Source of the DNA: Paragordius varius
Lineage: Eukaryota > Animalia > Nematomorpha
Direction of reading: 5' to 3'
Assembly (NCBI GenBank): GCA_964247055.1
Contig: OZ176050.1
Coordinates: 5,890,001 to 5,954,000, forward strand
Length of the DNA stretch: 64,000 nucleotides
Shown here: positions 3,928-56,582 of the stretch, in pieces
Layout of the letters: every line of letters begins with the position of its first letter
Position numbering within the stretch: position 1 is the first letter of the stretch
Position numbers and translations under genes: made by a program
The notes under the pieces: model-generated
Seen by the model: only the letters and a program-made list of their open reading frames with translations
What the model was told of the DNA's origin: nothing
Databases searched by the model: none

Positions 3928-10381
<6,454 letters not shown>

Positions 10382-13801: not shown

Positions 13802-16800
13802 ATGGGAGTCTTTGTTTCAGTTGCCCGGCCTGACGATCCTTTATCAAATGATGACGATGAAATATATTTAAATGCCCCATTTCCTGGAAACAAAAATCAA
13901 AGTTATAACTTTACATATATTTTAAATAATTTTTTGGTCCTGAATTAAATATTTTTCCCATACCATAACATTGTAAAAACTATACTCCAAATTTTGAAAA
14001 AATAGTTTAATCTTTTATAAATCAAAGTAATATTACAACTCTTATTGGAGCCCTGGCAAATATTTTTATGTGGAACTTGATTAAATGTTTGGTAAGAATT
14101 AGCGATTCAAATTATACCCAATATTTTTAATTTAAGCTATCTAAAACAACTAAAATTATCAAATAATTTTAATATTAAAAATATATTTGCGATAGGTGTT
14201 ATTTTATCAAGAGATACAGTTAATTTATGGACTTAATAAATATGGTAATGTAAAAACATTATCATACCGTCATTTACAATTAAAAATTTTTTTTGTTTAT
14301 TTTAATCCACCGCTAAACTTTCTACAGCTCATGGAGTGAAAAATGTAATAATAGGTTAACTTACATTCATTTAAGCATATCTTGAATGCATAATAAGATA
14401 TTTACTTGAAACCTCTGCCATCAATATTGGAGGTAGCTTTTAGTTGAGTAATTATGTGAACGACACGGATCTAAACTCGACTTTTATTGTAAATGATATA
14501 AGTATAAAGTTTACTTTTTTTTCATATGGGTAATAAATTACAATTAAGATCGGAATGTCTTAATGACATACCAAAGTGATGAATCCTATAGGTGTCCAGT
14601 AACAAATGCTAACAACTGCACAAACTAGATAAAATGAACAATAACCATTACAAAAACGCCCTTTGAAAAAATTGGTATTTTGCCGACATCAATTTAGATA
14701 ACTATGTAAGATTTATTTCTAACACCTTATAACTATAAAATCAATGATTTAAAAAAGAAAAATATAACTCCAGATTCGGAATAAAATCTAAATAAAAAGG
14801 AAGACGAAACGCCAACATATCGACCATGAACAAAATTAAACCTATTCTTTATTCTTCAAAATTTCGGCGACTAAAGCCTCTTTTCTGCCACTTCATAATT
14901 ACTAAAAATAATATTCGTAAGGTTTACGGGATTTATTAGCTTCTCTGTGACCCAATAAATTATGGTTTTGGTATATTTTTTGCGATTGGTATTAATTTTG
15001 AGTTGTTTCTAAATCACATAACCAATATTAGAAGTCAATAAATTTTAGCTAATACCTCTTCCTTTAATTAAATCATATTTATTAATTAGAAATTCAAAAT
15101 GGAACCAGCGGATACCAAAAGAAATCTGTCGGTAAAACCGGAAAATTGAATGAAATGGGAATAGTATCGTCTACTGAGCATAAAATTTATTTGTCACTTG
15201 CCAATAGACGAAGTTTTATTTTTAAATATAATTTTAATTTTCAGATATTTTATTATTTTTGGCTAAAAAGCCCATTAGCCACAGAATCAAAAATTAAAGT
15301 CACTTGGGGTATAAAGTCTGATTTTACACATTGTTTATAGTGAATATAAATTTTTTTCTTTATGAATAATAAACATAAGAATAAATAATGTGTATAGATG
15401 ATAAATATAATAATATGATTCAATAAGCTTTACTTTCAAAAGTGAAACATTTAAACTTCCAAAACTGCGTTTTTGATAAATATAGAATTTTGATGGTTAA
15501 TAATTAAATATGATATAAATAAACATGTTGTAGCGTTTTTTATCGTTAGTCTTAGAACCATATCCTTTGAGTAATTTAATGTGGTGCTATGAACTGGGGA
15601 AAATATAATTAATTATTTTGAAATATCAAACTAAATAAATTAATATTTCGCTGGATACTTTACCGCAAAAAAGTATAAAATAAAGCAAGTTAAAATATAT
15701 GATTTTTTATAACGGCAATGTGCAATAGAATTATATAAAACCACAAAATATGAAAATTATTACCATTTAATATATGTATAAAACTTTACCGCTATAAAGA
15801 ATTTTATTGTAAAAAATGGAATTAGATGCTCTTCCAAGGACCTAAGATATAGACGTAATAAAATTTAATGTATTTTATCTATTTGCAACCAGTCAAAAAT
15901 ATTTATAAATATATAAATTTTGTCAGACAGTATTGTTAAAAATCTTTTCCGACTAAAATGCTACACAACGCTCAGTTTGTTTTCTGAAAGCCGTTGGTTT
16001 TATTTAAAAAATACTGAAAAACATACTATATTTTATAATTATACAAATTTTTATATATCATTTTATAATAGAAAACATTCAAACACTTTCTCACGAAACA
16101 GGTTTCGCGAAAAATGAGCTGAGATTATATTATCGAGCATTCAAACAGGTGTATGTACATTCTAAATTTATAGATATGCCCGTCTGGCTATATGACATTT
16201 AATCATTTCCGCGAAATTTTTAAATTGATATTCCCCGAACAAAGTATATAAATTTTTTTGAGAAAGATCTATTTTGGCAGGGATTTATTCTGTCATTTAT
16301 TATAATTTGGTAGGAAAAATTATTCAAGTCATTATTAAAACGGTCAAAAATAGGATGCTATTGGTTATTTAAATAATTTATATAAAAGAATTAGTTGTTA
16401 CTTATTTAATAGGTAGAACGCCTTCATTGATAAAATGACGAAAGGTTGAACCTTTTATTTATATTAAGTTGTGTCATGTCGTTCGTTGGACAAGAAAACG
16501 TGCTTTTCCAAATTAACACATAAATTATTTATTTAATTTGTTGTGCGCATCTTTCATGCAAATGCAAATTATATTATTATAATATTTATAATAAATTAGA
16601 TTCTTATCAATATGCCTACTACATTTTTCAAAGCTTTGATCAAAATGGTTACGGATTTTTAACTTTTGAAGTATAATAACGTTGTATCCTTAAAGCTAAA
16701 TATATTTATATTATATATATATATTACTTACTTTATAAATTAAAGTTTCATCATTTCCCACATATCTGGTTCTTTGTAGGATTACATTATGAATTTGTCC

Positions 16801-18037
16801 GTAATAAGCAAAGGAACATACATGGACAAATTAAATTGGATTTTTGATTTATATGACATTGACAGAGATGGTAAAATTGGTGAAAGGGATTTCAGAAATC
16901 TCGTCTTATCCATTTTTGAATTGCAACTGAATGTTAGGGATGAACCTCAAACGGTTCACAAAACACACTCTACGACGACACACACGCTGAAAACTCCACT
17001 AATTTTGAGTTATTCGTTAGCTGAATCAAATAAAAAACCGTACTATAAATTGGATGATATTTTAGTCAAAGTACAATCATTATATAAAGTAATACTTTAA
17101 TATATCGTATTACCGTAATTAAATTGAAAAATAGCACATAAATTAATAATATATATAATTTTATACAATAATTCAAAAAATATTTTACAAGTGTTTTCAC
17201 CAGAATTTAAATTTGGTAAAGATACGAATTATATGTATCATAAATGACTTGAATTAAAAAACCTCATTAAATTAAAACGTTTAACTAACATGGCCCCACC
17301 CTTTATCTTGTCCTATAATTATACAAAATCGCAAATACATTAAAAGTTTGGGATGTAAAATATTTCATTGCATATTTGATATTTTTTTAAAAAATTGTCG
17401 CTGCAATGGTCATTAGTAAATATAGCTAAAATATTTTTATTATAGAATATAAATTTAACAGTTTTTATTGTTTTTCGAAATCGTCAGTTGGTTAGCATTT
17501 ATAGTAAAAAAAATTAACTGAAATCATACGGACAAAACGTAATAATATAAAGACAAATATTTTTTTCTAAAAGACAACCATACTTTTTAAATCTTGATTA
17601 AAAATATAACACATTGTTTAAAATGACAAAATGTAAAATAGATATATGTAACTAACACAATGAATTTTATATTTTACAATTGTAATTAAATAGCTAATAT
17701 GGGAAATATTAAGGTTTAAGAAGTATGGTTGTCTTTTCAATAAAAACATTTGTCGTGATATTTTTACGTTTTGTCCGTATAATTTCAGTTTTTATTGTAA
17801 TTACAATTTTTATGTATTATTTTAAAATTAAAATTTGTATAAATGGTTATATATAGTCTTTTTGCTTTTATCTATTAGAATTTCGCCGATAATCAACAAT
17901 ATTTGACCCGCAATCAATTTTTTCAGGTGGCTCGAAAGGTATATTTTTTTAATTTTTATAATTAATGTTTACAATATATTGCATAATTATAGTTGAACAT
18001 AGAAAGCAAACTTTCCAGCATTGAATCGTTTTTTTGA
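13802..18037 (+). CDS. Neuronal calcium sensor / KChIP (calsenilin)-like EF-hand protein. Core exons 16111-18037 are firm; N-terminal exons (13802, 15089) are tentative.
   Basis: GFAKNELRLYYRAFKQ|ICPSGYMTFNHFREIFKLIFPEQ|..YAYYIFQSFDQNGYGFLTFE|DYIMNLSVISKGTYMDKLNWIFDLYDIDRDGKI follows the KChIP/NCS pattern (FTKKELQSLYRGFK, CPTG, AFD.DG.G.I.FEDF, KLKWAFNLYDINKDG). Stop TGA 18035-18037. Candidate first exon MGVFVS... at 13802. Confidence 0.75.
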
Positions 18038-19868: not shown

Positions 19869-22800
19869 TCAATTGAGATCTATTAATCGCATATTGCTTT
19901 GTTTGAGATCTGAAAGAGAACCCTCTACCAAACAACTGAGTTCTTGGAAATGAATTAGCAATCTATTCCACAAGGGTTGTGTTGCTAACACCTCCCCATT
20001 CCCAATTATGATTAACCCAAACCTTAGATTTTGTGAAAATAATAAAACAATGCAAAAGTTTATTTAATAAATGATATCAGGTTTATAAGTTTCCCTATTT
20101 AAATGATAACATTAAATATTTAACAAATAATTTAATTTACTTTGCCCGCGTTAATGATACATTTAAACGGCGTGGATCGCTCAAAAATCCGATTTCGCAT
20201 TTTTCATTTGATCTGACACACGACAATATTATGTAATCCTTTTCTCGTCCTTGAAACGTGTCCACATTAGCAATTTCTATGCCCTTTAAACGTATGATAG
20301 AGAGCGAATCACATATGATATAATACATTTACGCAATTAGTATCAGTATAATGATATTAATATACTTGATAAAGTTTGGTCCCCTTTTTACTACGGATAT
20401 GATTGACAATGTATTCGCGCTGCCCTTCATAAGGCGTAATGACCCCAATTTGATCGGGTTTAATACCAGATGATAGAAGTTTAGTGATGGCTTCTTCCAC
20501 ATTTTTCGCCTCAATCTGGTTCATAAAGGTCGTAGCATGACGTTTCTTTTCTTGTCCATTTGTTGTGAGGAATATCATGGGACATTTTGGGTTAGGCCAC
20601 AGGGATTGGACAGATTCTTGCTTTCTATCATCTTAAAAATATTAATTTTCTTGATTAACAAACAAAGAAACAATATAAAAATACACCTAATTTAAACCAA
20701 TCTTTACAGGTAATTCAGTTTACCTTCCAACACCCCATTGTTAAGCATGCCTTTGTAAAACTCATTTGAAGGAAATAAAGCTAGACTAGGATGCATTCGA
20801 TATTGCACATCAAGACAGGTAGGTAGTTTTCCTAAACGCAACAATCTTTCAAACAAGGGTAAATTTAATCCTGATTTACTACTTCGGGGGCACATAACCA
20901 CAGGTCCCAGTTGGCATTGATCACCAACCAAAATAACCTAGAACGCAGTTAAAAACGCATTATATCATTGAGTAAGACAAAAAATGATGATAAAGTGGTG
21001 TCCCCACTTGTTTTATGTCAGAAAAATTTGCGATGGGGATAAGCGTTTCGGGCTCAGTGGCTTGTGTTGCTTCATCGATTATCAATGCATCTATTTTCTG
21101 TTCTTTAAACATGTAACTACCGGCCCCAATACACGTGGTACAAATAACATTAGCACCTTCTAGAACTTTCTGTTCATAGTTGTGTAGTAAAGCAATGTAT
21201 ATTCGATTTTGTTCGGAGGTTAAACAGTCACCGTTTATTTTCATGCGGTGTAGTTCCTTTGAATAAAAAAACATTATTTTTTAAGTAATAAATCAATTCT
21301 AATGTACCAATTTCTTAATCGATCATAGTTCGTATATAGCTGTTTAAAGCATATAGATGTGCTAAACATATTTGGATTTAATATTGCACATAGTTTGAAA
21401 ATTATTTTATTAGCCTACCATCGCAATTAGAAGTCATAGTACTTCCTATCGAGCAATAAATGGCTGCATGAAACGAAATTTTTAAGATTCGGATTTAATT
21501 TTATTTTAAAAGTGTAAAAGCAAATTACATATTACATGTTGGTTAATTTAGATTGTATGTTTACGTTAAATTTTTGGAAAAACTGCCAATAAAAGACCCA
21601 GCATGTTTATGGTAATAGTGCATAAAGTAAATAAATGTGATGCTCTTAATAATTGTGGTATGTAATATACCTTAAACAAATCGTTACTAATTTGGTTGAC
21701 TAAAATGTGAAGCGATATGGAGGAGAGAGGCGATTCCAAAGTCTGTCTATTCCTGGACATAACCCTAACAACGTTTAAACCTAAATCTTTGATCTTTAAA
21801 GCCAAATTATCAACTGCATTGTTACTGGCACCACAAACCAATACGCGTTTCTGCATTTTTACCAGGTAATACACAATAGTGGCTGACGTGACTGTTTTTC
21901 CAGTTCCTGGTGGTCCCTGTACAATAAATACATTTTTAAGCAAAGTTTACTTGCCTGAATAAATAAAACCTATATATTTATAAAAATGAAAAATGCTGGC
22001 TTTGTGATCTGTTTCCGGAAAATCGGTAGACCCATTCAAATCCAAATATCGAAAAAATTAATCATTAATGAATGCCCCGACAATAGCTTCGCCTTTTTGG
22101 GCCCCTAGTTCTGGCCTACCCCGTTTAAAAAACGGGTTTTTTGAAAACAAAAGTCCACAAAAATCGAATCTTTGAGACAATTTTCCGGAAAACGTGTTGG
22201 ACCATTCGATTTTAAATATGATTTTTTACTTATTTTCGATTGCGCCGAACATAGTCGGCCCGCTTTTTTAATTTAGGCCCTCTTTTTACCCGCTCCCCCC
22301 GTAAAAAGCCATTTTTTCAAAAAAATTAAGTCCGCAACAATAATTTTTTGAATCTATTTTTCGCCCAAGGTATGAGACCGTAAAAATTCAATTAGGATTC
22401 CAGATATTCCCTGTTAAAAGGCAAAAATTTTAGTCAAGCGTTTCTTTGATGATAGCTGCTGGGTAAGGAGCTACCTGCGAAAAACTGACCCGTCTTATCC
22501 AGGACAATGAGTTTAATAGCTGCTTAAAACATTACCCGTAACAAGGCAAATATTGAGATCATGCGGTTTTTTAAAATTAGCCATTAATTATGCCCTTCCC
22601 GCCCTGAAAAATGCGCCACCATAGAATAATTTTTTAATTTTGAGGCAACTTTACCGAAAACTAAAGGGAGCATATGGAATTAATCATGATTCCACGTATT
22701 CTCCGTAAAAAGGCAAAATTTTAATCAAGCGCCTTTTTTGTATCAGCCTCTGGGTAGGGAGCTACCCGTCTACAACTGCGCCACCATAACAAAATTGCGT

Positions 22801-25800
22801 TGTTTAGGAGATAATTTTCAGAAAATTTATCAGGCCATATAAGTTATTATAAGGCCCTAGAATATTACCCATAAAAAGGCAAAAATTTAAGTAAAGCGGT
22901 TTTAAATTAGCGGTTAAATAGGCTCTAGGTAGGGGGCTACCCGCGTAAAAATACGTGACTATATCGGTACAGCATGCCTTTGGAGCCAAATTTCAGAAAA
23001 CTTATGAGACTATGTGAGTTCAATAAGGGCTTAAAATTTTTTAATATAGGGGATTATTTCAATGAGTCGCTAAGAAAAGTTTTACCCCCTTAAAAATCGC
23101 ACCATAGAACAATTTTTTGGTTTTGAAGCAATATTTCCAAGAAAACATATGGACATTATAATTCCAGATAATCCCCATATAAATACAAAAATTTTGCCCG
23201 ACGCTTTTTTATGCCTGCCTCTGGGTAAGAAGCTACCCGCCAAAAACTGTGCCACTATATAGAAATTGCGTTGTTTTGGAGCTAATTTACAGAAAATTTA
23301 TAAGATATGAGCCCATTAAAAGCTTGAAAAATTACCCGGTAAAAATAAGGTCGGGCGATTTTCATAGCCGTTTATTTGGGGCCTTTATGTCCTAAAAATA
23401 CACCATCATATAACGATTATTTACTGTTGAGGTATTTTTTCGAATAACCCATGAGACGATGGTCTCAAAGATAATTCCAAATATTTTCCCTATAAAGGCA
23501 AAAAATTCTAGCGCTTTTTCGATATAGGCCTATCGGTAGGGGTCTACCGGTTTAAAACTGAGATGCCATACAAAAATGGCATGGCTTTGGAGCTAATTTT
23601 CAAAAAATTTAAAGCCATACGAGTTTAATAAAGGCTTTAAATATTACCCATAAAAAGGTAAAAATTATAGTATAGCGGTTTTTCCCGTTAGCCGCCAATT
23701 TGGGGCCTTTACACCAGTAAACAATATATTAGTATGAATGCACCGTTTTGAAAATCTTATGAGTTCATAGCTATTAAATGTTTCGAAATAATCCACATAT
23801 GTGGATTATTTTTTGTCCCTTTTTTCAAATAGCCCCCCCCCCCCCCCCCCCCCAGAAGTCCAAAGGACATCCTCGGGTCGCGTAGCAGCACGAGATTTAC
23901 GCTAGTAATATAATAGATATGTTTTTTGTTAGGGTTATTCGAAACAAGAAACATACATTTAACAAAATGTTTAAAACCAATTTATCGATAGATTGATGGA
24001 TAAAAATAACCACATTATAAAAGGGCAAAAATGTTAAATTAAATGTGAACAAGATACATTTTAGCGAGCATCAATTTTAAAAAATAATTTATCTAATATA
24101 ATAATATCGGTTATCAAAATTTGTTTCAAATAGTGTACCTGAAACTTTTTGATTAAAACTTGAATAATGTTTTAAACTATATGGAATTTGGAATCGAATT
24201 GGATAATATGATATTTAAATAAATCTATTAATTAAAACATATTTATATTATATAATACGACGGATAAGGTATATAAATATGATATCTCGATTAGCCAACT
24301 ACTACCCTACCTGGATTAGGGTAAATGGCTGTTTAATTGCCTTCATAACAGCATTGTGTTGAGATTCGTTTAAATTTGGTAAAAGAGAATTGGTGATTTT
24401 TTTAACCGGTATAGTGGTAACCCTTCCCCCGCCGGAACAATTGCCAATTATGTGTTGAAAGATGTCGTTGCACATGACAAAACGTGAGAGACCCTTTAGT
24501 GCTGCTTTCATTCTAGATTCAAGTTTATGGAATATAAATAATATATGTTTTGTGTATCTAATTAATCATGAAAAATATAAATTAACAACCAAGTTAAAAA
24601 AAATCATAAAGCATAGCGAAGCATAATTAGGCACGAACGTATAATGAATTTTTAAACATACATTTTTTGTGCAACGGTTTATATTTTAAATAAAATATTA
24701 ATAAAATTATGTTAGCCGAAATAGTTGTATATGTTAAAAAAAATATTTCCCACTTTTATATATATCCGGGATTGAGACAGCTTCCAAATCTAAAAAAACG
24801 CTTATTATTTAAATGAATAATTAACAAAATTTGCTGCACATTATAATTAAGGCATAAAATATAATTAACATGTTCGTTTAATTAGCGGTTTATTAAAAAT
24901 CCAAGACGGCCAAAAGTTCGAAAGAATTTATTGACATTTATATTGATAATATTGGATAATGTGCTTTAACGCTAAAGGCTATTTTAACTTGGCCTTATAA
25001 CATATCTAGTATCTGTGATATAATATCGCTTTGGGGTATAACAACCACCAAATGATTATAAAGTGATAAATCAATTCTGAAAATGTTTGATTGAACACAC
25101 TATGTTTTTAGAGACGAATTAGGTATTAATTACATCGTGTCTCCACCTTTTTAAGCAACTCTGGAAATTAAAAAATGATATCGGACAAAATTTCAGAGAA
25201 AATATTACATGGTAATAAAAGAACAAGTATATTTTTAAATAAATTACATTCCATACAGTAGCAAAAAATAAAACCATGATCGGATTATGAAACTGTATAC
25301 TTTCAAACAAAAGACTTTAGTTAAATTTACACTAAATCATTTTAAGTCTTCCTAAAACCGTGACTTATTGTTACTTGTAACAATTTAAGACATATACTGT
25401 GAGATATAATAAACCCATCGCTTAATATTACCTATCATGTGATGTAGAATTCCATTCAAATTGTACAGTAAATCCAGAAATAGGATATATTGGCGGAATG
25501 AATTTTTGAACAAACCCCAAAAAATCAACAACCATTTCTCCTTTAGAATTAGGCAACTCTACTATTTTTCCTTGAAACTTGACTTCTTTCGATGACCATA
25601 ATTTCTTTTTATTGTGTTTATCTAATAAAATATACTATTGGACACAAAAAACTGTGAATTTTCAATATTAAACTATTTTGCCGATAAATTTCTATTTTTA
25701 ACAAAACGGACAGCATTTAAGCTAGTTAGTCACATATTATAATGTGGGAACGGATCATTTTTAAAAAACGCAAAATTAAATGCACTACCGTTTATTAAAA

Positions 25801-28800
25801 ATATTTATAAAATTATTAAACATTTAATTTTCAATATTTAACATCAGGGGTTAACAAAAGATGTGGTTGTTTTAATATCTAGTAGATAATTGTATTTTCA
25901 AAGATTTAAAGAAGCAATAACAATATATTATCGGTAGTTAGATCGTTAGATATAAGATAAAATGGCAATATAAATTCATTCTAAAACACAAAAAATGTTT
26001 GTACTTGTATTGGGTAAAAAGCCCATGGATAAAGTATTGGAGATATTCATTATATCGCCTTCCATTAATTTCAATTCTATATTGATAATGTGAAAATATA
26101 TTTTGCACACCATACTGCCCTCTCATAAACTTTAAGAACCAAACTAATATATATATATATAACAAACTAAGAAAGTTTTTAAAAAGTTTTTCAACCCATC
26201 AGAACGGACCGGTTAAATTTTAAACAAAATAATTGTCTACGTTTAAACCAGGGATGTCCAACACAATTGGCTTCATGAACCGCATTTTCGGATCAAAAAA
26301 TCGGGGGGGGGGGGGGGGGGGGGGCGTATTCCCAAAATATATGGGCATTAACGAATATTTTATTAGAAGTCAAACCTAAGACTGTAAAAACTACTATTTA
26401 TTTTAGCATTTTTTGGCAGTTCATTGTCAGTAAAAGATATATCCAGAAAATTTGTTAAAGAAAATCAATCTTACTTAGATTTCGTAAAATTTTGCATTTG
26501 AAATTTCTCGCAGCAGAAATATTTTGGAGGGCCGCGTGTTGGCCACCCCTGGTTTGACATAATAATATAATGGCTAAAAAATAAGTATAAAAAATTCATT
26601 AAATGTGCATTTGGATTTAAACGCTTGTAGATATACATAAAAAATGGTAAATACTTGATATAGTTTTGGGAAAAATGATGGTAAACCTTTTGTGCGTTGT
26701 CCATATTATAGTTATGTTTGTGAAAATTGGTGTCTCTATCGCCTTTTTATTATAATCAGCATCCCATCTAATAGGGTTGATTAAAAAGTAAAAAAAGTTG
26801 TACTCTAAGAAATTATTAAATGTTTAAATATACAATGTATAACTAAATAAAGTTTTAAACATAAATACATCAAGAAATTAAAATATACCGAAACATATAT
26901 TTTGAAAAGATATTTTTTTAAATCTCACACCCAAAGATAACAATTGAGTAAAATATGATTGAGTGATACCATCATTTTTTTACTTTGCAACATAAAACGC
27001 TATTTTTTATTTAAAAAACCAAGATTAAAAAAAAGAATGTTTTTTTCAAAAAAACATTGGTCTTTTAGTTTTTACGTTTTATCTTTATAATTTCAGTTTT
27101 ACTGTATTTTATTTTGCCCAGAATTAAATTTGGATATTATTGGGTTGGAATTGGTTGAAAAAATTACAGATACCCTTTAATCAGTGACATCTAACGTGAA
27201 AGTCGTAAAAGGGAATGCGTAAAAAAATACATTTTCTTTTTACATATGCTGGAATTATTTGATTTCACAATAGAAAATTACCTTTTTAAAACCATTTAAA
27301 GGAAGAAGAACCCAAAAATAATTTAAATTATGACATAGTGGCTATCGATTTTGAGGGGGCGTAACAAAAGAATGAAATTACAAAAATTAAAATCATAGAG
27401 AATGTCGTTATTGACCGATGCTGAAATATTGACAATGCGAATAAATGTGTTTATTAAACCCAAAAAAGATATTAACTATATTTTTCGAATCCATATAATC
27501 GGGTTAATTAAAAAAAACGGCCATTCTTTAAAATAAATTATAATTAGTAAAAAGTCCAAACTCGATAAGTTGTAAAAATTTATCAGTGTATTCCTTTTCA
27601 TTTTCGTATCTTATTTTGCTTTTGAATTGCGCTTGATCTCTAACTGCCTGTTTTTTTCTCTCAATAATTTCATTCTAAAGAAATGTATATGTAAATTTTT
27701 ATCGTACATTCATTATTTAGAGTTAATATTATAAATATTAAGGGAATACTTTCAATAACTTTTCAATTTCTGTCATTTTTTGAGCCGTGACAAGTCTCAG
27801 GGGCGGTATTTTACAAAATTTCGGATGTATGCCTCCCTTAGAAATCAATGATTCCCATTTTTTACGATCCCTATAAGAAAAATTGTATTATCAAATAAAA
27901 TAAACCATTTTTTATCCCATTTGCAATTTTCAGGCGCTGGTTTGCATACGACAGGGTAAATATTTTTGCAATTGTAGGGTAAAAATCCTAACTCAAAAAC
28001 ATTTTTTGATGCACAGTTGCAACATTTTAACGGTATAATCGCTTTACTGCCCGATATCCCTACAGAGACATGATTGGCCCGTACTAAGTGATTGATGATA
28101 TGGCTAAAAGGATACATACGTTGATACATTATAAAAATTCCATGTTTAAAAGTGACTTAATTTCAAATAATATTTTAGTTTTATTAAAAAAAAGTTTCAC
28201 AAACATGGTGAAAATCGCATATTTGTAATATAGATTTTTAATTTATGCAACACAATAATAAGTTATGATTTTTTTCAAATTACAGATTATAGATATGCTT
28301 AACTAACGTGTACAAAACAAATAATTCATAATCAAAATAATTGTTAATTTAATTTTAATTTAAAAATTAAACCTTGTAGTTCCGCCCCCATTACAAAACC
28401 ATTTCTCACATACCGTACAAAATACAAGGGAATCCCGATCGTCTATAAGACAATAACTATGCAGTGTGAGTAAAAATATATTGGTAATTTTTCATTTAGC
28501 ATTTACAGTTCAATAAATCGAAATAAGCCAATTCACAAAATCAATTATATATTTAAATAATAAAATCATGTAACATTTTAGAAAATTTCACAAGCGATTT
28601 TTGCTGGCAAGAAGTTTAGATGATCCTTATTAGTCTTTTTTGAAAAGGATTTTTGAGGCACAAAAATAAATGGAAACCATATTTTATAATAAGATTCACA
28701 GTCAGGATTGTTTTTTATTAAATTCCATGTTGGTCTCTGGAAAACTAACTTAAAATGTTAAATATTTTAGAAAACAGATTTGCAAATCATATACGCCAGT

Positions 28801-29303
28801 TCGGAGATATATAAAATGCAATTATAATTGAAATATTTAAGCAATTAAAAGATTATAATTTTAGGCGAGATATGACTTGTAAAAATAGGTAGAATAACTC
28901 TTTTCCTCTTGTTAATTACTGAATATATAAAATCAAAAAATGGCTGGCAAAAACTTAAAACGGATTCACAATAAAATCTTTATCATAAAGGTCATAGGAA
29001 CTCATATTATCATAGTTTTCATAAAGAATACTAATCTAATCAAACGAAAATATTGGGTGCAAAACTAAAAATATTTAAAAAATTAATTAAATATATTCGT
29101 ATAAAATCTAATAAATATAATTTTTAACAATTTTTTCGGGTAATAATTGAAAATATTCTATACCTGCATTTAGATGTTTCGGCAGCAGATTTATCCAACT
29201 TCAATTTTCGAAAAGCATTTGTTAGAGATTCGTCTTCATTTAATTTGGTATTTTCAATATCATCATTTAATTTATTGTTCGTATTCATGATTGCTCCCAT
29301 CAT
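19869..29303 (-). CDS. UPF1-like: Divergent UPF1 paralog (SF1B helicase with CH zinc domain), ~834 aa. Exons 29303-29164, 28456-28373, 28103-27906, 27870-27750, 27674-27562, 26767-26655, 26076-26005, 25621-25432, 24512-24311, 21916-21671, 21256-21008, 20937-20724, 20631-20366, 20283-20141, 20022-19869.
   Basis: All 14 introns are GT-AG with consistent phases, giving 2505 nt with no internal stop by hand. Motifs: CSYC...CTVCEKWFC...[12 protein letters not shown] (CH domain), [53 protein letters not shown]. Confidence 0.9.
21969..23905 (+). mobile_element. Non-autonomous Helitron (family A), full length, in intron 9 of the UPF1 paralog
   Basis: 5' (T>C)CTATATATTTATAAAAATG; degenerate internal subrepeats; 3' poly-C, hairpin region, then CTAG followed by T at 23902-23906. 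Confidence 0.8.
26249..26551. mobile_element. hAT (Buster-type) MITE with internal poly-G, in intron 6 of the UPF1 paralog
   Basis: Ends CAGGGATGTCCAACAC / GTGTTGGCCACCCCTG; flanks gtttaaac / gtttgaca resemble a decayed 8-bp TSD. Related copies at 36988 and 61286. Confidence 0.7.
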
Positions 29304-31636: not shown

Positions 31637-34070
31637 CAGTGGTACTCACCAAAAAAATTTGACGGGCCAAATAAAACATATTTTTTTTTCGAGGGCCATG
31701 AACCTTATAATGGCAAATATTCCATAGCTATTTGACACATACGCACATATTTATACTCTAAATCAGCACAATAAATTTTTTGCGGGTCGCATGTAAATCC
31801 AGCTAAAAATTCGTTTTGCACCATTTAGTTTTAAAAATTAAAATATATTGATAACAACATTTATTTTAATATTAACCAATAATTTTTGACAAATTTGGTT
31901 TCGCCTCATGGCAGGCCATTCTTAATACGTCGTCCATATGATCATTAGTTAAGCGATTTCTGTAAGTATTCTTGATATACTTCATTTTTAAATATGCCGT
32001 CTCACACGAGTAAGTTTATGGAAAAATAGTTAAGATAACTTGAGCACATTTTTTTATATTTTCATATTTATTTGGCACACTTGCCAAAACTCTATATATC
32101 TTTCTTCTCTACGGTTTTCCTTAAATATAGCTTCCAAATTGGAATCATTTTTAAAATCAACGAATTCTTCAATGATAACCGCCTGATCAAAACCGAAAAG
32201 CTCAAGTTGCTTAATGTTGGATATATCCATATGCCATGGATTTTCCACTAACTTTAAGCAATTTTTTATATTTTTTAATTCTTGAAATCTGAATTTCATC
32301 TCATTAGATAAAATGTTAAATGATTGTCTATTATTAAATTAATATCCGCGGTAAATTCCATATTTTCTTTATGAATCGTTTTAAGTGTTGGAAAATGTAG
32401 GAGTGTTTTATCTATAAAATCTTGTTTATATATTATTAATTTTTTTTCAAAAGCAAATATATGATTAGCAAATTGGGTTATTATTTTGCTCCCTTAAAGA
32501 CTTGTTTTAAAAGTACTAGGTTTCTAAGTAATGTCGCAAAGGTAGGCTAATAAAACCCACCATTTGTCACTATTAACCTCGTCAAACTTTCTGTTATCTT
32601 TTATAAATAATAGAATTTCCTGTCTTAAATCAAAAAATATTCAATACTTTGCTAAGGCTTAGCCATCTCACAGCGGTATACAAAAGAATATCATCAAACT
32701 CACTGTGGATATCTTAGAAGGTTTTTGAATTTAATGTGATTGAATTCTCTGCCACGGATGTAGTTAATTATATCCACAACCGTTTTAATTACTAAATTTA
32801 GTGATTCATCTTTTACACGCGAAACCAAGTTTTGCTAATGAATAAAGCAGTGATAATAGATTTTGCAAATTATATTTGTTTTTTAAAAGAGAAATAAACC
32901 CTTTGTTTATTCCAATCATAGAGGGACAGCAATCTATGCAGATCGAAACCAATTTTTTCATAGATATACCATTATTATCGAAAAAGGTGCTAATTACTTC
33001 AAGAAAATCACTGCCTTTTGTGGTATTATTCATTGGTAAAAATTTCAAATATTCCTCGTTGATTATGTTGTCGTTGCAAAATCTCACGAAGAGCGCACAT
33101 TGAGGTGTTGAACTTATATCAGTGCTAGAATCGATTGCAATACTGAAGTATTTGCAATTTTTCAGAGCCAATAATGTATTGTTAAAAATATATTTAGACA
33201 TATCTTCAATGCGTCGAGCACATGTTGAATCAGAAAGTTGAAGTTTTTTAATTTGCCTCATGATTTGATCTTTATTATGGAATTTATCAAATAAAAAAGT
33301 GCAACTATTTATTAAACATTCTTTAATTAGTTGTGAATCAGTAAACGGTTTCATATTTTTTCCTAAAATATGGCAAATTTCATACGAAGCTAATGTTACA
33401 GCTTTTTCCTGGGAAAAAGCTATGGCCATAATAGATTTTTCTTTCTCGTATAATTCCTTAAAATTTTTATATTTTTCATTTCTTTCCTCAAGATTTTCTG
33501 GTAATTTATGAGAATGATGGATTTTAAAATGTCTTTCAATATTGTATTTTTTATAACTATATTATCCTTGCATATAAGGCAGGTAGCAACATTGTTATTT
33601 AAAACGACAAAAAAATTAGTTTCCCATTCTTTTTTAAAGGAGCGATTTTCATCGGATAACGTTTTTTGGCATTAGATGTCATCCTTTGAATTTATGTTTA
33701 AATATTATGTAAAAAAATAGAATATAAATTGAATTATGCTATAAAAAACAGGTCGAAATTTAATGATATTGAGTTGAAAATATTTTATGAGAATGAGTTT
33801 TAAAAATGATGCAGGATAGCAATGAAATGTATGTGCAATGGGTGAAAACAAAAAAGAAATGCAATAAAAATTTCAAAAAGAAAAGAAAAGAAATAACGTG
33901 TGCCCATAAATCATAAATTTTAAAATCATTTTAATGTAGGAAATTTTTCTACATTTCAAATTGGGTAAAAAATAAATATTATTTAAAAAAATTAAATATC
34001 AGTCATAGTGCATTTTTAAAGCACACTTAGGGCCGCATGCGGCCCGCGGGCCGCGGTTTGAGTATCACTG
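31637..34070 (-). mobile_element. hAT DNA transposon (Buster/SPIN-like), 2434 bp, complete ends
   Basis: TIRs CAGTGGTACTCA / CAGTGATACTCA; perfect 8-bp TSD GTCTAGTC (31629-31636 and 34071-34078) with the central TA typical of Buster elements; GC-rich subterminal GGCCCGCGGGCCGC. Confidence 0.92.
31890..33682 (-). pseudogene. Degenerate hAT transposase (GTF2IRD2/ZBED8/SPIN-like) with frameshifts and stops
   Basis: ORF 32806-33429 has KPFTDSQLIKECL, QLSDSTCARRI, YFSIAIDSSTDISSTPQCALFVR and ICIDCCPSMIG. Further fragments at 32054-32299 and 33510-33682 are in other frames. Confidence 0.88.
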
Positions 34071-40637: not shown

Positions 40638-52821
<12,184 letters not shown>

Positions 52822-53049
52822 TCTCGAAATCTGAATTGAAGATATAATGAATGTATGGTATATTTAATCGGTGAATCGTATGTATATAACGAGAAAAAAT
52901 GTTATGGGTAAGGATAATATCATAAATGTCCAAAAGATTGAATATTATAATGAAGAGTTCACCTTTAAAATAAATATATAATTAATATTATAAACTTTTT
53001 ATTGTTATAATTTTTAAGTAACAGTATCGCCGTACGCTTCTTGCTCTTT

Positions 53050-56000
53050 ATGGACGGCATATGCGGTTTTAAGTTTGTGATATTAATGAAATATATATGT
53101 TCACATATACGAATGCATCAAGAATTTTATTATGCTTATTATTTTGGGCCATACGACTGATACTTGGATACAACTAGGGTTGTGCAGTTGACTCCTTTTT
53201 CAAAATGTCCGGTCAGACCCAGTCTCTTTATATCAAAGTTGAATGTTATTGTAATAATAAAGTATAATTTTAGGGTTAGAATCAAATAAACACGATATTT
53301 TAGAAAAATTATGATAAAAATGGCGCCAAATTTTTTTCCAAAATTTAGATATTTTGCTTATATATAAAAAATATCAGGATAGAAGCAAAAATTTAAATTG
53401 GAGCCGTTTCTTTAGTATTTTTTTAAAATCAACTTAAATATATTCTGGGGTATTTAAACCCATTTGAATCGGAGTGTTAAGAAAAATATTTACACTTTAC
53501 TAATTGTTTCATATCTAAAAATCGTATAATTATTTCATATGCTTGAGGTTATTTTTGATATTTTGGGTTCATTGCACAGTTTTATGATGGAAACGGTATC
53601 AAAATGCTTGATGATAATAATCACTTTTTCTATATAATTCAATTATGCTAACATCTCCATCACATCGATTTAGTAACATATATTTTCGCCGTTAAATTTA
53701 TATTAAACATAAATTGTTTATTTTTACAGATGTTAACCCATATTTGAAGCCAAGAGCCTCAAAATCGAAATGTGAATGAGAAAAGTGTTTATCATTAAAT
53801 TATATAGAAAAAGTGGTATTATAATATCGTACTTTTCGCAATATCTCGGGTGTTTTGCTTTTATTTAAAAAAAAACTAGCCCATTTCAGAGGTTGCCAAA
53901 AACGAGATATGGGAAGCCAGTATTTAAATATAAAATTTTATAAAAATGTTTTTAGCCATTTATATGTAGTTTATGACATATTTAATCCATATTTTTGGAA
54001 TTTAGCTTTCACAAAATATTTTACTGAAATATGAACTAACTTTGCAATTTTTTATATAAAGATAATTTCCTTATATCACTCCTAAGGCCCAAAACAAAAA
54101 GCACCATGAGAATCCTGATACATTTTATAGAATATATATTTTATCAGGAAATTTTTTGTGTACACTATGTAAATAGATCATAATAAAGCACTTTTACGGC
54201 AGCATGTAATTGGTGATCCGCGAATCGTAACTACTACCTTTGTTATACCGTTATTACCGTACTTCAACATGCCAAATAAACCTCGACAAAACTTTGCTAA
54301 ATTTTGATTTTTAAAGAAATATACATTTTTTGGAAAAATATTTTATTTTTATGTCATCTATGGTGCAATATCGGAATTTTTGCGTCTTTAACACTTCGAT
54401 TCAAATTTTTAAAAAACTATTGAAGGATACGGTCCCAATTTAAAATTATGCTTCATATATTAATAAAAATTATATAAATAAACCAAAATATCTAAAATAA
54501 TTTTATTTTGATAAAAGTTACATGTGAGACTACTTCGAAGCTATTTTAATTTTGCAACATTTTTCAAAATATGTGTTTATTTAATTTTAAATGTCAAATT
54601 AAGGCTTATTTTTTCATTAAATTACATCTAACATTGATAGAAATTTAATGGTTTATTTATTATTATTTTTTTCCAATGCACACATGTTTCGATTAAATTT
54701 TCGCCTTGTTTCACATTAAAATAAGTATTTCAAGTTTTTTGTATAAATTATATATAAGTGCTAAATTTTGCCATATTTTTTAATGTATTTAATTTTAAAC
54801 GGGCCTGGAGTCCACTACTCTAAGAATCGAAGGACTGAAGTAAATGTGTTGTGTCCAAGTGTTAAAAAAACTAGACCATTGCGTATGATACTTAGGTAAT
54901 CCATTTTTAATATAAATTAGAATATGTATATTTAAATTTGGTTTTTATTAATGATTTTAATGAATAATTTTTTTGTAACATATAAATTTAATTTAAAAGA
55001 ATGTGCCGTGATTTTACGATTTTTCAATCGGGCCAATTTGCATAAAAGGCTAAATATCATTTTTTTAATTTAATCAAAGCATAAACCAGGGCTTCTTAAA
55101 CTTTTGTAGTCCCCGACCCCATTTAGATTGCGAGACTCTTAACGGCCGCAACAATTATAAAAGAAAAATAATAGTTTTTCGAATTAACATTTATTTTGTT
55201 GATAATATTTATTAAGATTATTTCGGTTTTGAGAGATTGACAAAAATAAATCTACATTTTTTATAAATTTCTATAACATTTTCTGATTGCCCTGTCACGC
55301 TTCGGTGTGGCGTAGTCTAACCGACAATTATTCTTAATAATTTGCAATAAATAGAGTTAATGGAGATAAAAAATAATTATAAACATTTAATAATAATTAT
55401 TCTTTTACGGGTTTTTGCATAGGCTGAAATATTGTGTACTCGAAATCGACCATATTTAATCTGTCCCTTATTAAAGTTAATATTCAACTATCATTGGTTT
55501 TATTTTAAGATTTTTCTTTTACTAAAGTTATTTGAAATTGTGTTCATACAGCTGGGATCAAGAGATAAAAAGTAAATCTTCTATGGTCCCTTTTAAAGGA
55601 AAGAATGATATTATACTGAACTCGTATGGCTTCTTAAGCTTTTTGAAAATTAGTTCCAAAACTACGCCATTTTGTATGGCGTTTCAGTTTTAAACCGGTA
55701 GACCCCTGCCCATAGACCTATATGGAAAAAGCGCTGAGATAAATTCTTTGCCTTTATAGGGCAAATATTTGGAATCATCTTTGATACCATAGTCTCATGG
55801 GTTATTCGAAAAAATACCTCAACACTAAATAATCGTTATATGATGGCCTAATTTAGGGCATAAAGATCCAAAATTAACGGCTAATAAAAAAATTCTACCT
55901 TAATTTTTACCTAGTTAGGGTTAATATTTCAAGCTTTTAATGAGCTTATATGGCCTTATAAATTTTCTGTAAATTAGTTCCAAAAAAACGCAATTTCTAT

Positions 56001-56582
56001 AGTGTAACGCAGTTTTGGCGTCCTTACCCGGCAGCCAAAATTAAAAAACGCAAGACTATAAAATTATTGCCTTTTAACAGAGAATAACTCTAAACCTTAG
56101 TGAATTTTAACAGTCTCATATCCTGGGCAAAAAACTATTTACTTTTTAAAAAAAATGGCATTTTATGGGGGAACGAGTAAAACGAGAGCCCAAATTAAAA
56201 AAGTAAGCCGACTAGGTTCGGCGCAATCGAAAAAAAAGTAAAAATAATCATTATTGAAATCAAATAGTCCAACACGTTTTCCGGAAATTTGTCTCAAAGA
56301 CATGATTTTTCTGGACCGTTTTTCAAAAAAACCCGTTTTTACAGGGGGTGAACCCGAACTGGGAGCCTAATTCAAAAAAGGGCGAAGCTATTTCGGGGCA
56401 TCCATTAATGATTATATTTTTTTGGCATTTAAATTTGAATGAGTCTACCGTTTTCGGAAACAGTTCACAAAGCCAGCATTTTCCGTTTATACAAATATAT
56501 AGACTATAATGATTGGAATGGAAATGCTGGTATAAACAGTCTTTCCGAAACAGAAGATTTTATGATATATTTAATTTTACAA
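53050..56582 (+). CDS. Tentative 5' exons of the P5B ATPase (53050-53065, 53730-53771, 56503-56582)
   Basis: Phase-compatible GT-AG exons giving MDGIC|DVNPYLKPRASKSK|YYNDWNGNAG...LILQ|VWLPKD. No homology support; ATG would be divergent from the UPF1 ATG 229 bp away. Confidence 0.3.
53161..53476 (+). mobile_element. TTAA MITE, deleted copy
   Basis: (T)ACTTGGATACAAC start and GGAGTG|TTAA end; body similar to 34417-34987. Confidence 0.5.
54392..54861 (-). mobile_element. TTAA MITE (piggyBac-like), inverse copy of 34417-34987
   Basis: TTAA|CACTTCGAT...TGTCCAAGTG|TTAA; reverse complement aligns along the 34.4-35.0 kb copy. Confidence 0.65.
55615..56503 (-). mobile_element. Non-autonomous Helitron (family A), inverse orientation, 3'-truncated
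   Basis: Minus strand TCTATATATTTGTATAAACGGAAAATGCTGGC at 56503; body is the reverse complement of 21969-23650. Confidence 0.75.

Follow-up and report, generated by a model that had tools for sequence, protein, structure and literature searches.

Why should an animal genome carry two genes for UPF1, the central and usually unique motor of nonsense-mediated decay (NMD)? This question is raised by a window of 64,000 nucleotides (nt) of the nematomorph Paragordius varius (assembly GCA_964247055.1, contig OZ176050.1, positions 5,890,001 to 5,954,000; the window is the whole of this stretch, and positions are counted from its first letter), in which a canonical UPF1 gene is followed, on the same minus strand, by a second and strongly divergent one, hereafter the paralog. 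Our results show that the paralog has an intact gene structure and originated in this lineage by duplication at the DNA level. It is, in our judgement, probably a functional, lineage-specific tandem duplicate acting as a specialised helicase that is independent of phosphorylation.

The first point to settle is whether the paralog is a complete gene. The window is AT-rich (guanine and cytosine (GC) content of about 24-36% in 2-kb steps) and looks like an intron-bearing animal genome. Fragments of helicase open reading frames (ORFs) are found on its minus strand in two places, at about 19.9-29.3 kb and about 41-53 kb, and the stop-free segments of both places, when compared as protein, give colinear significant matches that begin in a Cys-rich N-terminus and continue until the helicase core ends. 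A purpose-written spliced protein-to-genome aligner (BLOSUM62 scoring, GT/GC-AG introns, three phases), run on the window, yields 14 colinear coding exons for the paralog (exons 2-15, 28456-19869). Eight annotated UPF1 proteins of other animals, used as a control, were regained residue for residue from their own loci, and the junction calls of this aligner are therefore trustworthy where proteins align. Exon 1 (29303-29164) was added by hand reading, its GT donor joining it in phase 2 to 'x|YC'. The resulting gene, on the minus strand from 29303 to 19869, has 15 exons encoding 834 codons, with a single terminal stop and no frameshift, and 14 introns of 35-2394 nt, all of them GT-AG, so that all 28 splice dinucleotides are intact. 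The initial annotation, made from the letters of the window, had described a complete 15-exon gene of about 834 amino acids (aa) without stop or frameshift, and this gene is reproduced by spliced alignment together with the hand-read first exon. GC content is 36.8% in the exons versus 28% in the introns. At the exon 7/8 junction an alternative model with a weaker acceptor gives a protein of 825 aa. The exons, together with the shortest intron, are arranged as follows.

29164..29303, minus strand: exon 1, with the ATG at 29303-29301, an in-frame TAA directly upstream and a GT donor at 29163; 46 codons and 2 nt, encoding a short acidic N-terminus whose last residue is the first Cys of the CH domain
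28373..28456, minus strand: exon 2, from spliced alignment; CH domain, first zinc knuckle; Pfam UPF1_Zn_bind, 33.3 bits
27906..28103, minus strand: exon 3, CH domain (CCNC); UPF1_Zn_bind, 41.6 bits; PDB matches to UPF1/NAM7 CH domains only
27871..27905, minus strand: micro-intron of 35 nt, GT-AG; an intron of 291 nt at the same position in the canonical gene
27750..27870, minus strand: exon 4, from spliced alignment; last part of the CH domain and first part of the stalk
27562..27674, minus strand: exon 5, stalk; the phase-2 intron position at its end is common to the canonical neighbour only
26655..26767, minus strand: exon 6, domain 1B (WDADYNKK...ITIIW)
26005..26076, minus strand: exon 7, loop of domain 1B; the alternative donor at 25988 leads to the 825-aa model
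25432..25621, minus strand: exon 8, domain 1B (GKIVELPN); alternative, weaker acceptor at 25577
24311..24512, minus strand: exon 9, stalk helix as far as ...TLIQ
21671..21916, minus strand: exon 10, RecA1 with motif I (GPPGTGKT) and motif Ia; Pfam AAA_11, 56.9 bits; five synonymous variants
21008..21256, minus strand: exon 11, domain 1C and motif II (IIDEATQ); AAA_11, 65.3 bits
20724..20937, minus strand: exon 12, motif III and motif IV (VQYRMHP); Pfam AAA_12; two synonymous variants
20366..20631, minus strand: exon 13, RecA2 with motif V (ITPYEGQR); AAA_12, 54.3 bits; PDB matches to UPF1/NAM7 only
20141..20283, minus strand: exon 14, motifs Va and VI; AAA_12, 78.9 bits; three synonymous variants
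19869..20022, minus strand: exon 15, end of the helicase core followed by TGA at 19871-19869; no C-terminal tail

Intron 6 contains, at 26300-26330, a homopolymer of about 28 C on the strand of the gene.

Which helicase family does this gene belong to? When domains are searched on single exons, two separate exons of the CH domain lie above the Pfam cutoff of PF09416 (UPF1_Zn_bind, 25 bits), and AAA_11 and AAA_12 lie above their cutoffs on single helicase exons; on the short single exons of domain 1B, the Pfam 1B profile gives no match. Domain profiles built from 54 UPF1 proteins were run on the spliced paralog, with shuffled controls, none of which scores. The CH domain is recovered at 96.9 bits, the stalk/1B at 68.7 bits (E 3e-17 at Z=1e6), 1C at 21.3 bits, RecA1 at 96 and 108 bits and RecA2 at 287 bits. 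Helicase motifs I, Ia, II, III, IV, V, Va and VI are all intact, and every ligand of zinc sites 1 and 2 is kept in the CH domain. PDB searches with a CH exon and with exon 13 match UPF1/NAM7 only, and with exon 11 (1C and motif II) UPF1/NAM7 is found at 1e-11 versus 3e-5 for the next helicase family (Sen1-like). The CH domain and this ranking speak against membership of the IGHMBP2, SETX/Sen1, MOV10, ZNFX1 and DNA2 families. By its CH domain, its superfamily 1B (SF1B) core, its 1B and 1C domains and its descent (see below), the paralog belongs to the UPF1 (RENT1/Nam7/SMG-2) family.

The paralog is nevertheless far from any UPF1 in sequence. It is 45.3% identical to the canonical copy over 790 aligned residues and 41-45% identical to any animal UPF1, at a roughly even distance from all; the canonical copy reaches 65-70% identity with UPF1 of molluscs, cnidarians and vertebrates and is extended at both termini. 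This divergence had been described as uneven, with the ATPase core best kept, on hand counts of 38/48 identities in the motif V-VI exon and roughly 30% in the stalk/1B. A recount gives 38/48 in the former, 63% in the motif III-IV exon and 25-37% in the stalk/1B exons, and the same unevenness is borne out by the identities of the domains.

CH domain: 40% between paralog and canonical copy, 76% between canonical copy and mammal
Stalk/1B: 35% between paralog and canonical copy, 62% between canonical copy and mammal
1C: 28% between paralog and canonical copy, 65% between canonical copy and mammal
RecA1: 45-56% between paralog and canonical copy, 79-81% between canonical copy and mammal
RecA2: 61% between paralog and canonical copy, 79% between canonical copy and mammal

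The two ends of the protein differ even more clearly. In the paralog, 45 residues precede the CH domain and 10 follow the helicase core. Missing as a result are the N-terminal conserved region, KLVN..DAREA and the C-terminal tail; the canonical neighbour has all three, its core being followed by KLVNxxNPGARF..DAREA and then by a long tail. In animal and plant UPF1, the N- and C-terminal regions rich in serine/threonine-glutamine (S/T-Q) motifs are phosphorylated by SMG1; they are not a feature of yeast Upf1. The S/T-Q cluster is absent from the paralog at both ends, and the S/T-Q tail of UPF1 is not found in it. Within the core, a 2-aa deletion affects the GRGNTSGSH loop, and exon 10 lacks a 23-aa insertion that the canonical copy has. 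At CH positions regarded as UPF2-binding determinants, LECY and VV in the neighbour are replaced by LKCC and IY in the paralog.

The origin of the paralog can be read from its introns when they are compared with those of the canonical gene, for which two features are needed here.

40696..54241, minus strand: canonical UPF1 gene, from spliced alignment; exon ends uncertain in both tails
52483..52507, minus strand: canonical micro-intron of 25 nt, GT-AG; an intron of 707 nt at the same position in the paralog

The paralog lies about 11.4 kb (11-12 kb) downstream of canonical UPF1, a figure that hinges on the poorly conserved C-terminal exons of the latter. The tandem arrangement on one strand is as first described, and the 11.3 kb given at that time is as dependent on these uncertain exons as our own value. 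The introns of eight other UPF1 genes (Nematostella, Lingula, Branchiostoma, Rotaria, Hymenolepis, Trichinella, Nippostrongylus and Neocloeon) were mapped with those of the window pair on one alignment. Thirteen of the 14 paralog introns coincide with canonical introns both in phase and in alignment column. The remaining one, situated in the variable 1B loop, is no more than one codon away from its canonical counterpart, and in both genes a phase-1 model can be built on an identical 'ag|ATAAA' acceptor; the initial statement that all 14 introns agree in position and phase holds as it stood for 13, and for the last one under this shared alternative model. Three positions (one in the stalk, one in the 1B loop and one ahead of 1C) are common to both window copies and have no counterpart in the eight other genes. 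Conversely, introns 307(2), 428(1), 637/640(2), 679(0) and 955(0), present in three to six of these eight genes, are absent from both window copies, and no nematode-specific intron is found in the paralog. As these gains and losses are common to the window pair only, the duplication is dated to this lineage, and it affected a gene that was already lineage-modified. The micro-introns of 25 and 35 nt, which correspond to introns of 707 and 291 nt in the other copy, indicate that intron length changed greatly after the duplication. In both UPF1 genes the micro-introns are accompanied by introns that reach hundreds to thousands of nt. With its 14 introns at parental positions beside the canonical gene, the paralog is a DNA-level tandem duplicate, as initially proposed, and of lineage-specific origin, rather than a retrocopy or an ancient subfamily.

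Is this duplicate maintained by selection? The locus was found in five of ten sequencing runs, all five being DNA-like, with contigs continuous across introns. In one DNA-like run of the same species label and in one of a second label, the contig pieces depart from the window sequence by about 1-3%; the paralog has been seen so far only in runs under these two labels, which are about 1-3% apart here. In run X1, from another individual under the same label, three contigs show ten differences from the window in exons and five in introns. Every one of the exonic changes is synonymous; nine fall at third codon positions, and one is a Leu CTA/TTA exchange. The five intronic differences are spread over 222 nt (divergence of about 0.02), and the exonic proportions of synonymous and non-synonymous differences are about 0.06 (pS) and 0 (pN), respectively. 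As 22% of the sites in the codons concerned are synonymous, the chance of ten out of ten under neutrality is about 3e-7. The coding sequence of the paralog is thus under purifying selection, as had been supposed for the ATPase core from the uneven divergence and the lack of any frameshift or stop. A processed retrocopy or pseudogene is contradicted by the 14 introns at parental positions, the lack of any disablement and the 10:0 synonymous variation.

All these results can be brought together in a scenario that we favour. A duplication at the DNA level would have copied the whole UPF1 gene with its introns, and one copy would have stayed conservative. The second copy would have evolved six to eight times faster, keeping the CH domain, 1B, 1C and all ATPase/helicase motifs and losing both S/T-Q regions. 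Its product is probably a UPF1-type RNA helicase, ATP-dependent and of 5'-3' polarity. As the tails are absent, it would not be switchable by SMG1 tail phosphorylation and would not recruit SMG5/6/7 via phosphorylated tails. The paralog most likely encodes an ATP-driven UPF1-type RNA helicase that would not need SMG1 tail phosphorylation, and it would act as a specialised helicase in RNA remodelling or decay, perhaps restricted to a stage or tissue, rather than as a redundant NMD factor. The sub- or neo-functionalisation proposed initially is plausible; a second branch of RNA surveillance or a modulator of NMD had been suggested as its form.

Several of our observations weigh against this scenario or make it less secure. 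Firstly, no transcript of the locus was found in the RNA-labelled runs, which are tiny and were searched with the paralog only, their depth for canonical UPF1 not having been gauged. Their sole match covers 38 nt (20240-20277 of the window, with 5 mismatches to the motif V-VI exon). On the contigs concerned, of 1.9 and 2.6 kb, the flanking sequence has no counterpart in the window and resembles another helicase belonging to that superfamily; this match probably derives from the mRNA of another SF1B helicase, of the same or of a contaminating organism. Secondly, no orthologue of the paralog in another genus was found in protein collections, so that the selective constraint is read from present-day variation. 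Exon 13 gives 773 matches among 1.84 billion representative proteins, and among the best 150 of these none is clearly nearer to the paralog than to the canonical copy, except for one weak fragment of 89 aa; a word-indexed search with the same exon returns three fragments of 51-53% identity. Thirdly, some parts of the protein are altered or poorly recognisable: the 1C profile gives a weak match (E 0.013), and in zinc site 3, where three ligands remain, the fourth Cys lies three residues downstream. Fourthly, the variant set comprises the best-supported differences only, and one divergent X1 contig over exon 15, with 18 mismatches and 11 gap letters, is not classifiable. Finally, what is said here of helicase activity and of UPF2 relies on motif conservation and on background mutant data.

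The sequence trees add a further difficulty. In two data sets the paralog groups with long-branched protists, in another one with Trichinella. Its terminal branch is of 5-7 substitutions per site versus 0.7-0.9 for the neighbour (six to eight times longer), and its composition is deviant. When the paralog is constrained as sister of the neighbour, the log-likelihood (lnL) changes by +14 in the 56-taxon set (p of the approximately unbiased test, p-AU, 0.8) and by -18 in the 31-taxon set, where the grouping is again not rejected (p-AU 0.099) although the sign is unfavourable. Rare substitutions give mild support to this grouping, since 11 of 49 deviations of the neighbour are common to the paralog versus 6-13% for other long-branched taxa. 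Because of its long branch, sequence trees cannot place the paralog, and intron positions are relied on instead; of the phylogenetic check suggested initially, what survives is that a sister grouping is not rejected, while the placement itself comes from the introns.

A more specific version of the favoured scenario is that the paralog could be a natural separation-of-function UPF1, catalytically competent, devoid of the tails that serve SMG1 and SMG5-7 and with a remodelled UPF2 surface, standing beside a normal UPF1. We regard this version as possible, without going so far as to call it probable. If it is true, the separation-of-function copy could run RNA surveillance or remodelling uncoupled from classical NMD, or could tune NMD.

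Among the other explanations, the one that survives best, while remaining unlikely, is that the paralog is a modulator or decoy of NMD. A copy without tails would bind the RNAs of UPF1 or its partners (UPF2, release factors) without signalling to SMG5/6/7, and would damp or redirect NMD, in the way that UPF3A is reported to oppose UPF3B in mammals. The loss of both S/T-Q tails together with the retention of the CH domain and RNA-binding core would suit such a role, as would the selection acting on the copy, and the tandem genes could have a co-regulated dosage. However, every catalytic motif is kept, which would be needless for a pure decoy, and the presumed UPF2-binding positions have changed.

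A role in the germline or in genome defence, as a helicase directed against transposon or viral RNA and comparable to MOV10/MOV10L1 or ZNFX1, appears a little more doubtful still. The very long branch of the paralog could be explained in this way, its divergence being concentrated in the regulatory and surface domains (CH, 1B and 1C) more than in the ATPase core, and the genome is rich in high-copy repeats. The present variation is, however, synonymous only, and gives no sign of ongoing diversifying selection.

That the paralog might be a decaying or non-functional duplicate, still open by chance, is very improbable. The missing transcript in the tiny RNA libraries, the very long branch, the lost tails and the altered zinc site 3 would all be expected of such a relic, but 834 codons in 15 exons that remain open at 45% identity to the parent are far beyond the expectation of neutral drift, and the splice dinucleotides, the helicase motifs and the 10:0 ratio of synonymous to non-synonymous variation speak in the same direction. 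Least probable of all is an ancient UPF1-like subfamily, or another SF1B family member, that merely happens to lie beside UPF1: the trees that place the copy outside animals or with Trichinella, and its about equal identity to all animal UPF1s, would fit this idea, but the UPF1-specific CH domain, the PDB searches (two of the three giving UPF1/NAM7 only, the third putting it far ahead), the intron set of the neighbour with its three positions unknown elsewhere, its five common absences and its lack of nematode-specific introns, the absence of any paralog-like protein among the best 150 of the 773 matches and the sister grouping that neither data set rejects are all opposed to it.

What is established so far is the gene structure and the selective constraint. 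How UPF1 is regulated by its CH domain, by UPF2 and by phosphorylation of the tails is known largely from engineered truncations. The paralog is in effect a natural truncation mutant, in which motor and CH domain are kept by selection, both tails are gone and the regulatory surfaces have changed rapidly. From it one could learn which activities of UPF1 are of use alone, and how an essential single-copy helicase gets duplicated and specialised.

The remainder of the window contains repeats and two other genes. One feature lies within the paralog itself.

21950..23950, no strand assigned: very high-copy repeat, filling most of the 2394-nt intron 9 of the paralog; word depth up to millions in DNA runs

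Cross-locus protein matches reveal a copy of this repeat in a canonical intron, at about 43200-44960, and ORF translations similar to it are found at about 2150-2950 and about 56160-56510. The repeat family has many internal rearranged joints, and some copies contain a poly-G/C run. In the spacer between the two UPF1 genes, an ORF of 207 aa (32806-33429, minus strand) matches DUF4371 with 19.4 bits, below the cutoff, and is probably a transposase remnant. The two neighbouring genes are a glycosyl hydrolase family 63 gene, mannosyl-oligosaccharide glucosidase-like, with a weak Pfam match in one exon (4058-10381, plus strand), and an EF-hand calcium-sensor-like gene (16789-17100, plus strand). 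Rfam and tRNA scans of the window gave no match.

How does the window compare with known systems? UPF3A/UPF3B and MOV10/MOV10L1 are RNA-surveillance paralog pairs in which one duplicate has a regulatory or germline-specific role. They belong to other protein families and serve here as background, as models for such a role of a duplicate. Canonical UPF1 (human UPF1/RENT1, yeast Upf1/Nam7) has the same order of domains as the paralog, namely CH, stalk, 1B, RecA1 with the 1C insert and RecA2; unlike the paralog, it has the N-terminal region, KLVN..DAREA and the S/T-Q tail, and its GRGNTSGSH loop and zinc site 3 are intact. In Hymenolepis, no second UPF1 was found within 10 kb downstream of its UPF1. 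The 1959-aa 'UPF1' of Schistosoma japonicum was considered as a divergent tandem pair and rejected, as it consists of two near-identical canonical copies head-to-tail; this fusion model is probably an assembly or annotation artefact. The literature search, which turned up no paper on a divergent UPF1 paralog in an animal, gave two UPF1 homologues in the ciliate Tetrahymena (PMC5499736). This ciliate resembles the window in having more than one UPF1-family gene per genome, a likeness drawn from description, but it is a protist and the event is independent. Among animals, extra UPF1 genes are also present in the snail Batillaria attramentaria, whose second UPF1 is 75-79% identical to the first, and in some fish, where the teleost 'UPF1-like' is about 90% identical to the main gene. 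The initial statement that UPF1 is single-copy in animals is thus roughly true only, and fails for Batillaria and these fish. These copies are of near-normal length, about 930-1090 aa, whereas the paralog of the window is only 45% identical to its neighbour and is truncated at both ends.

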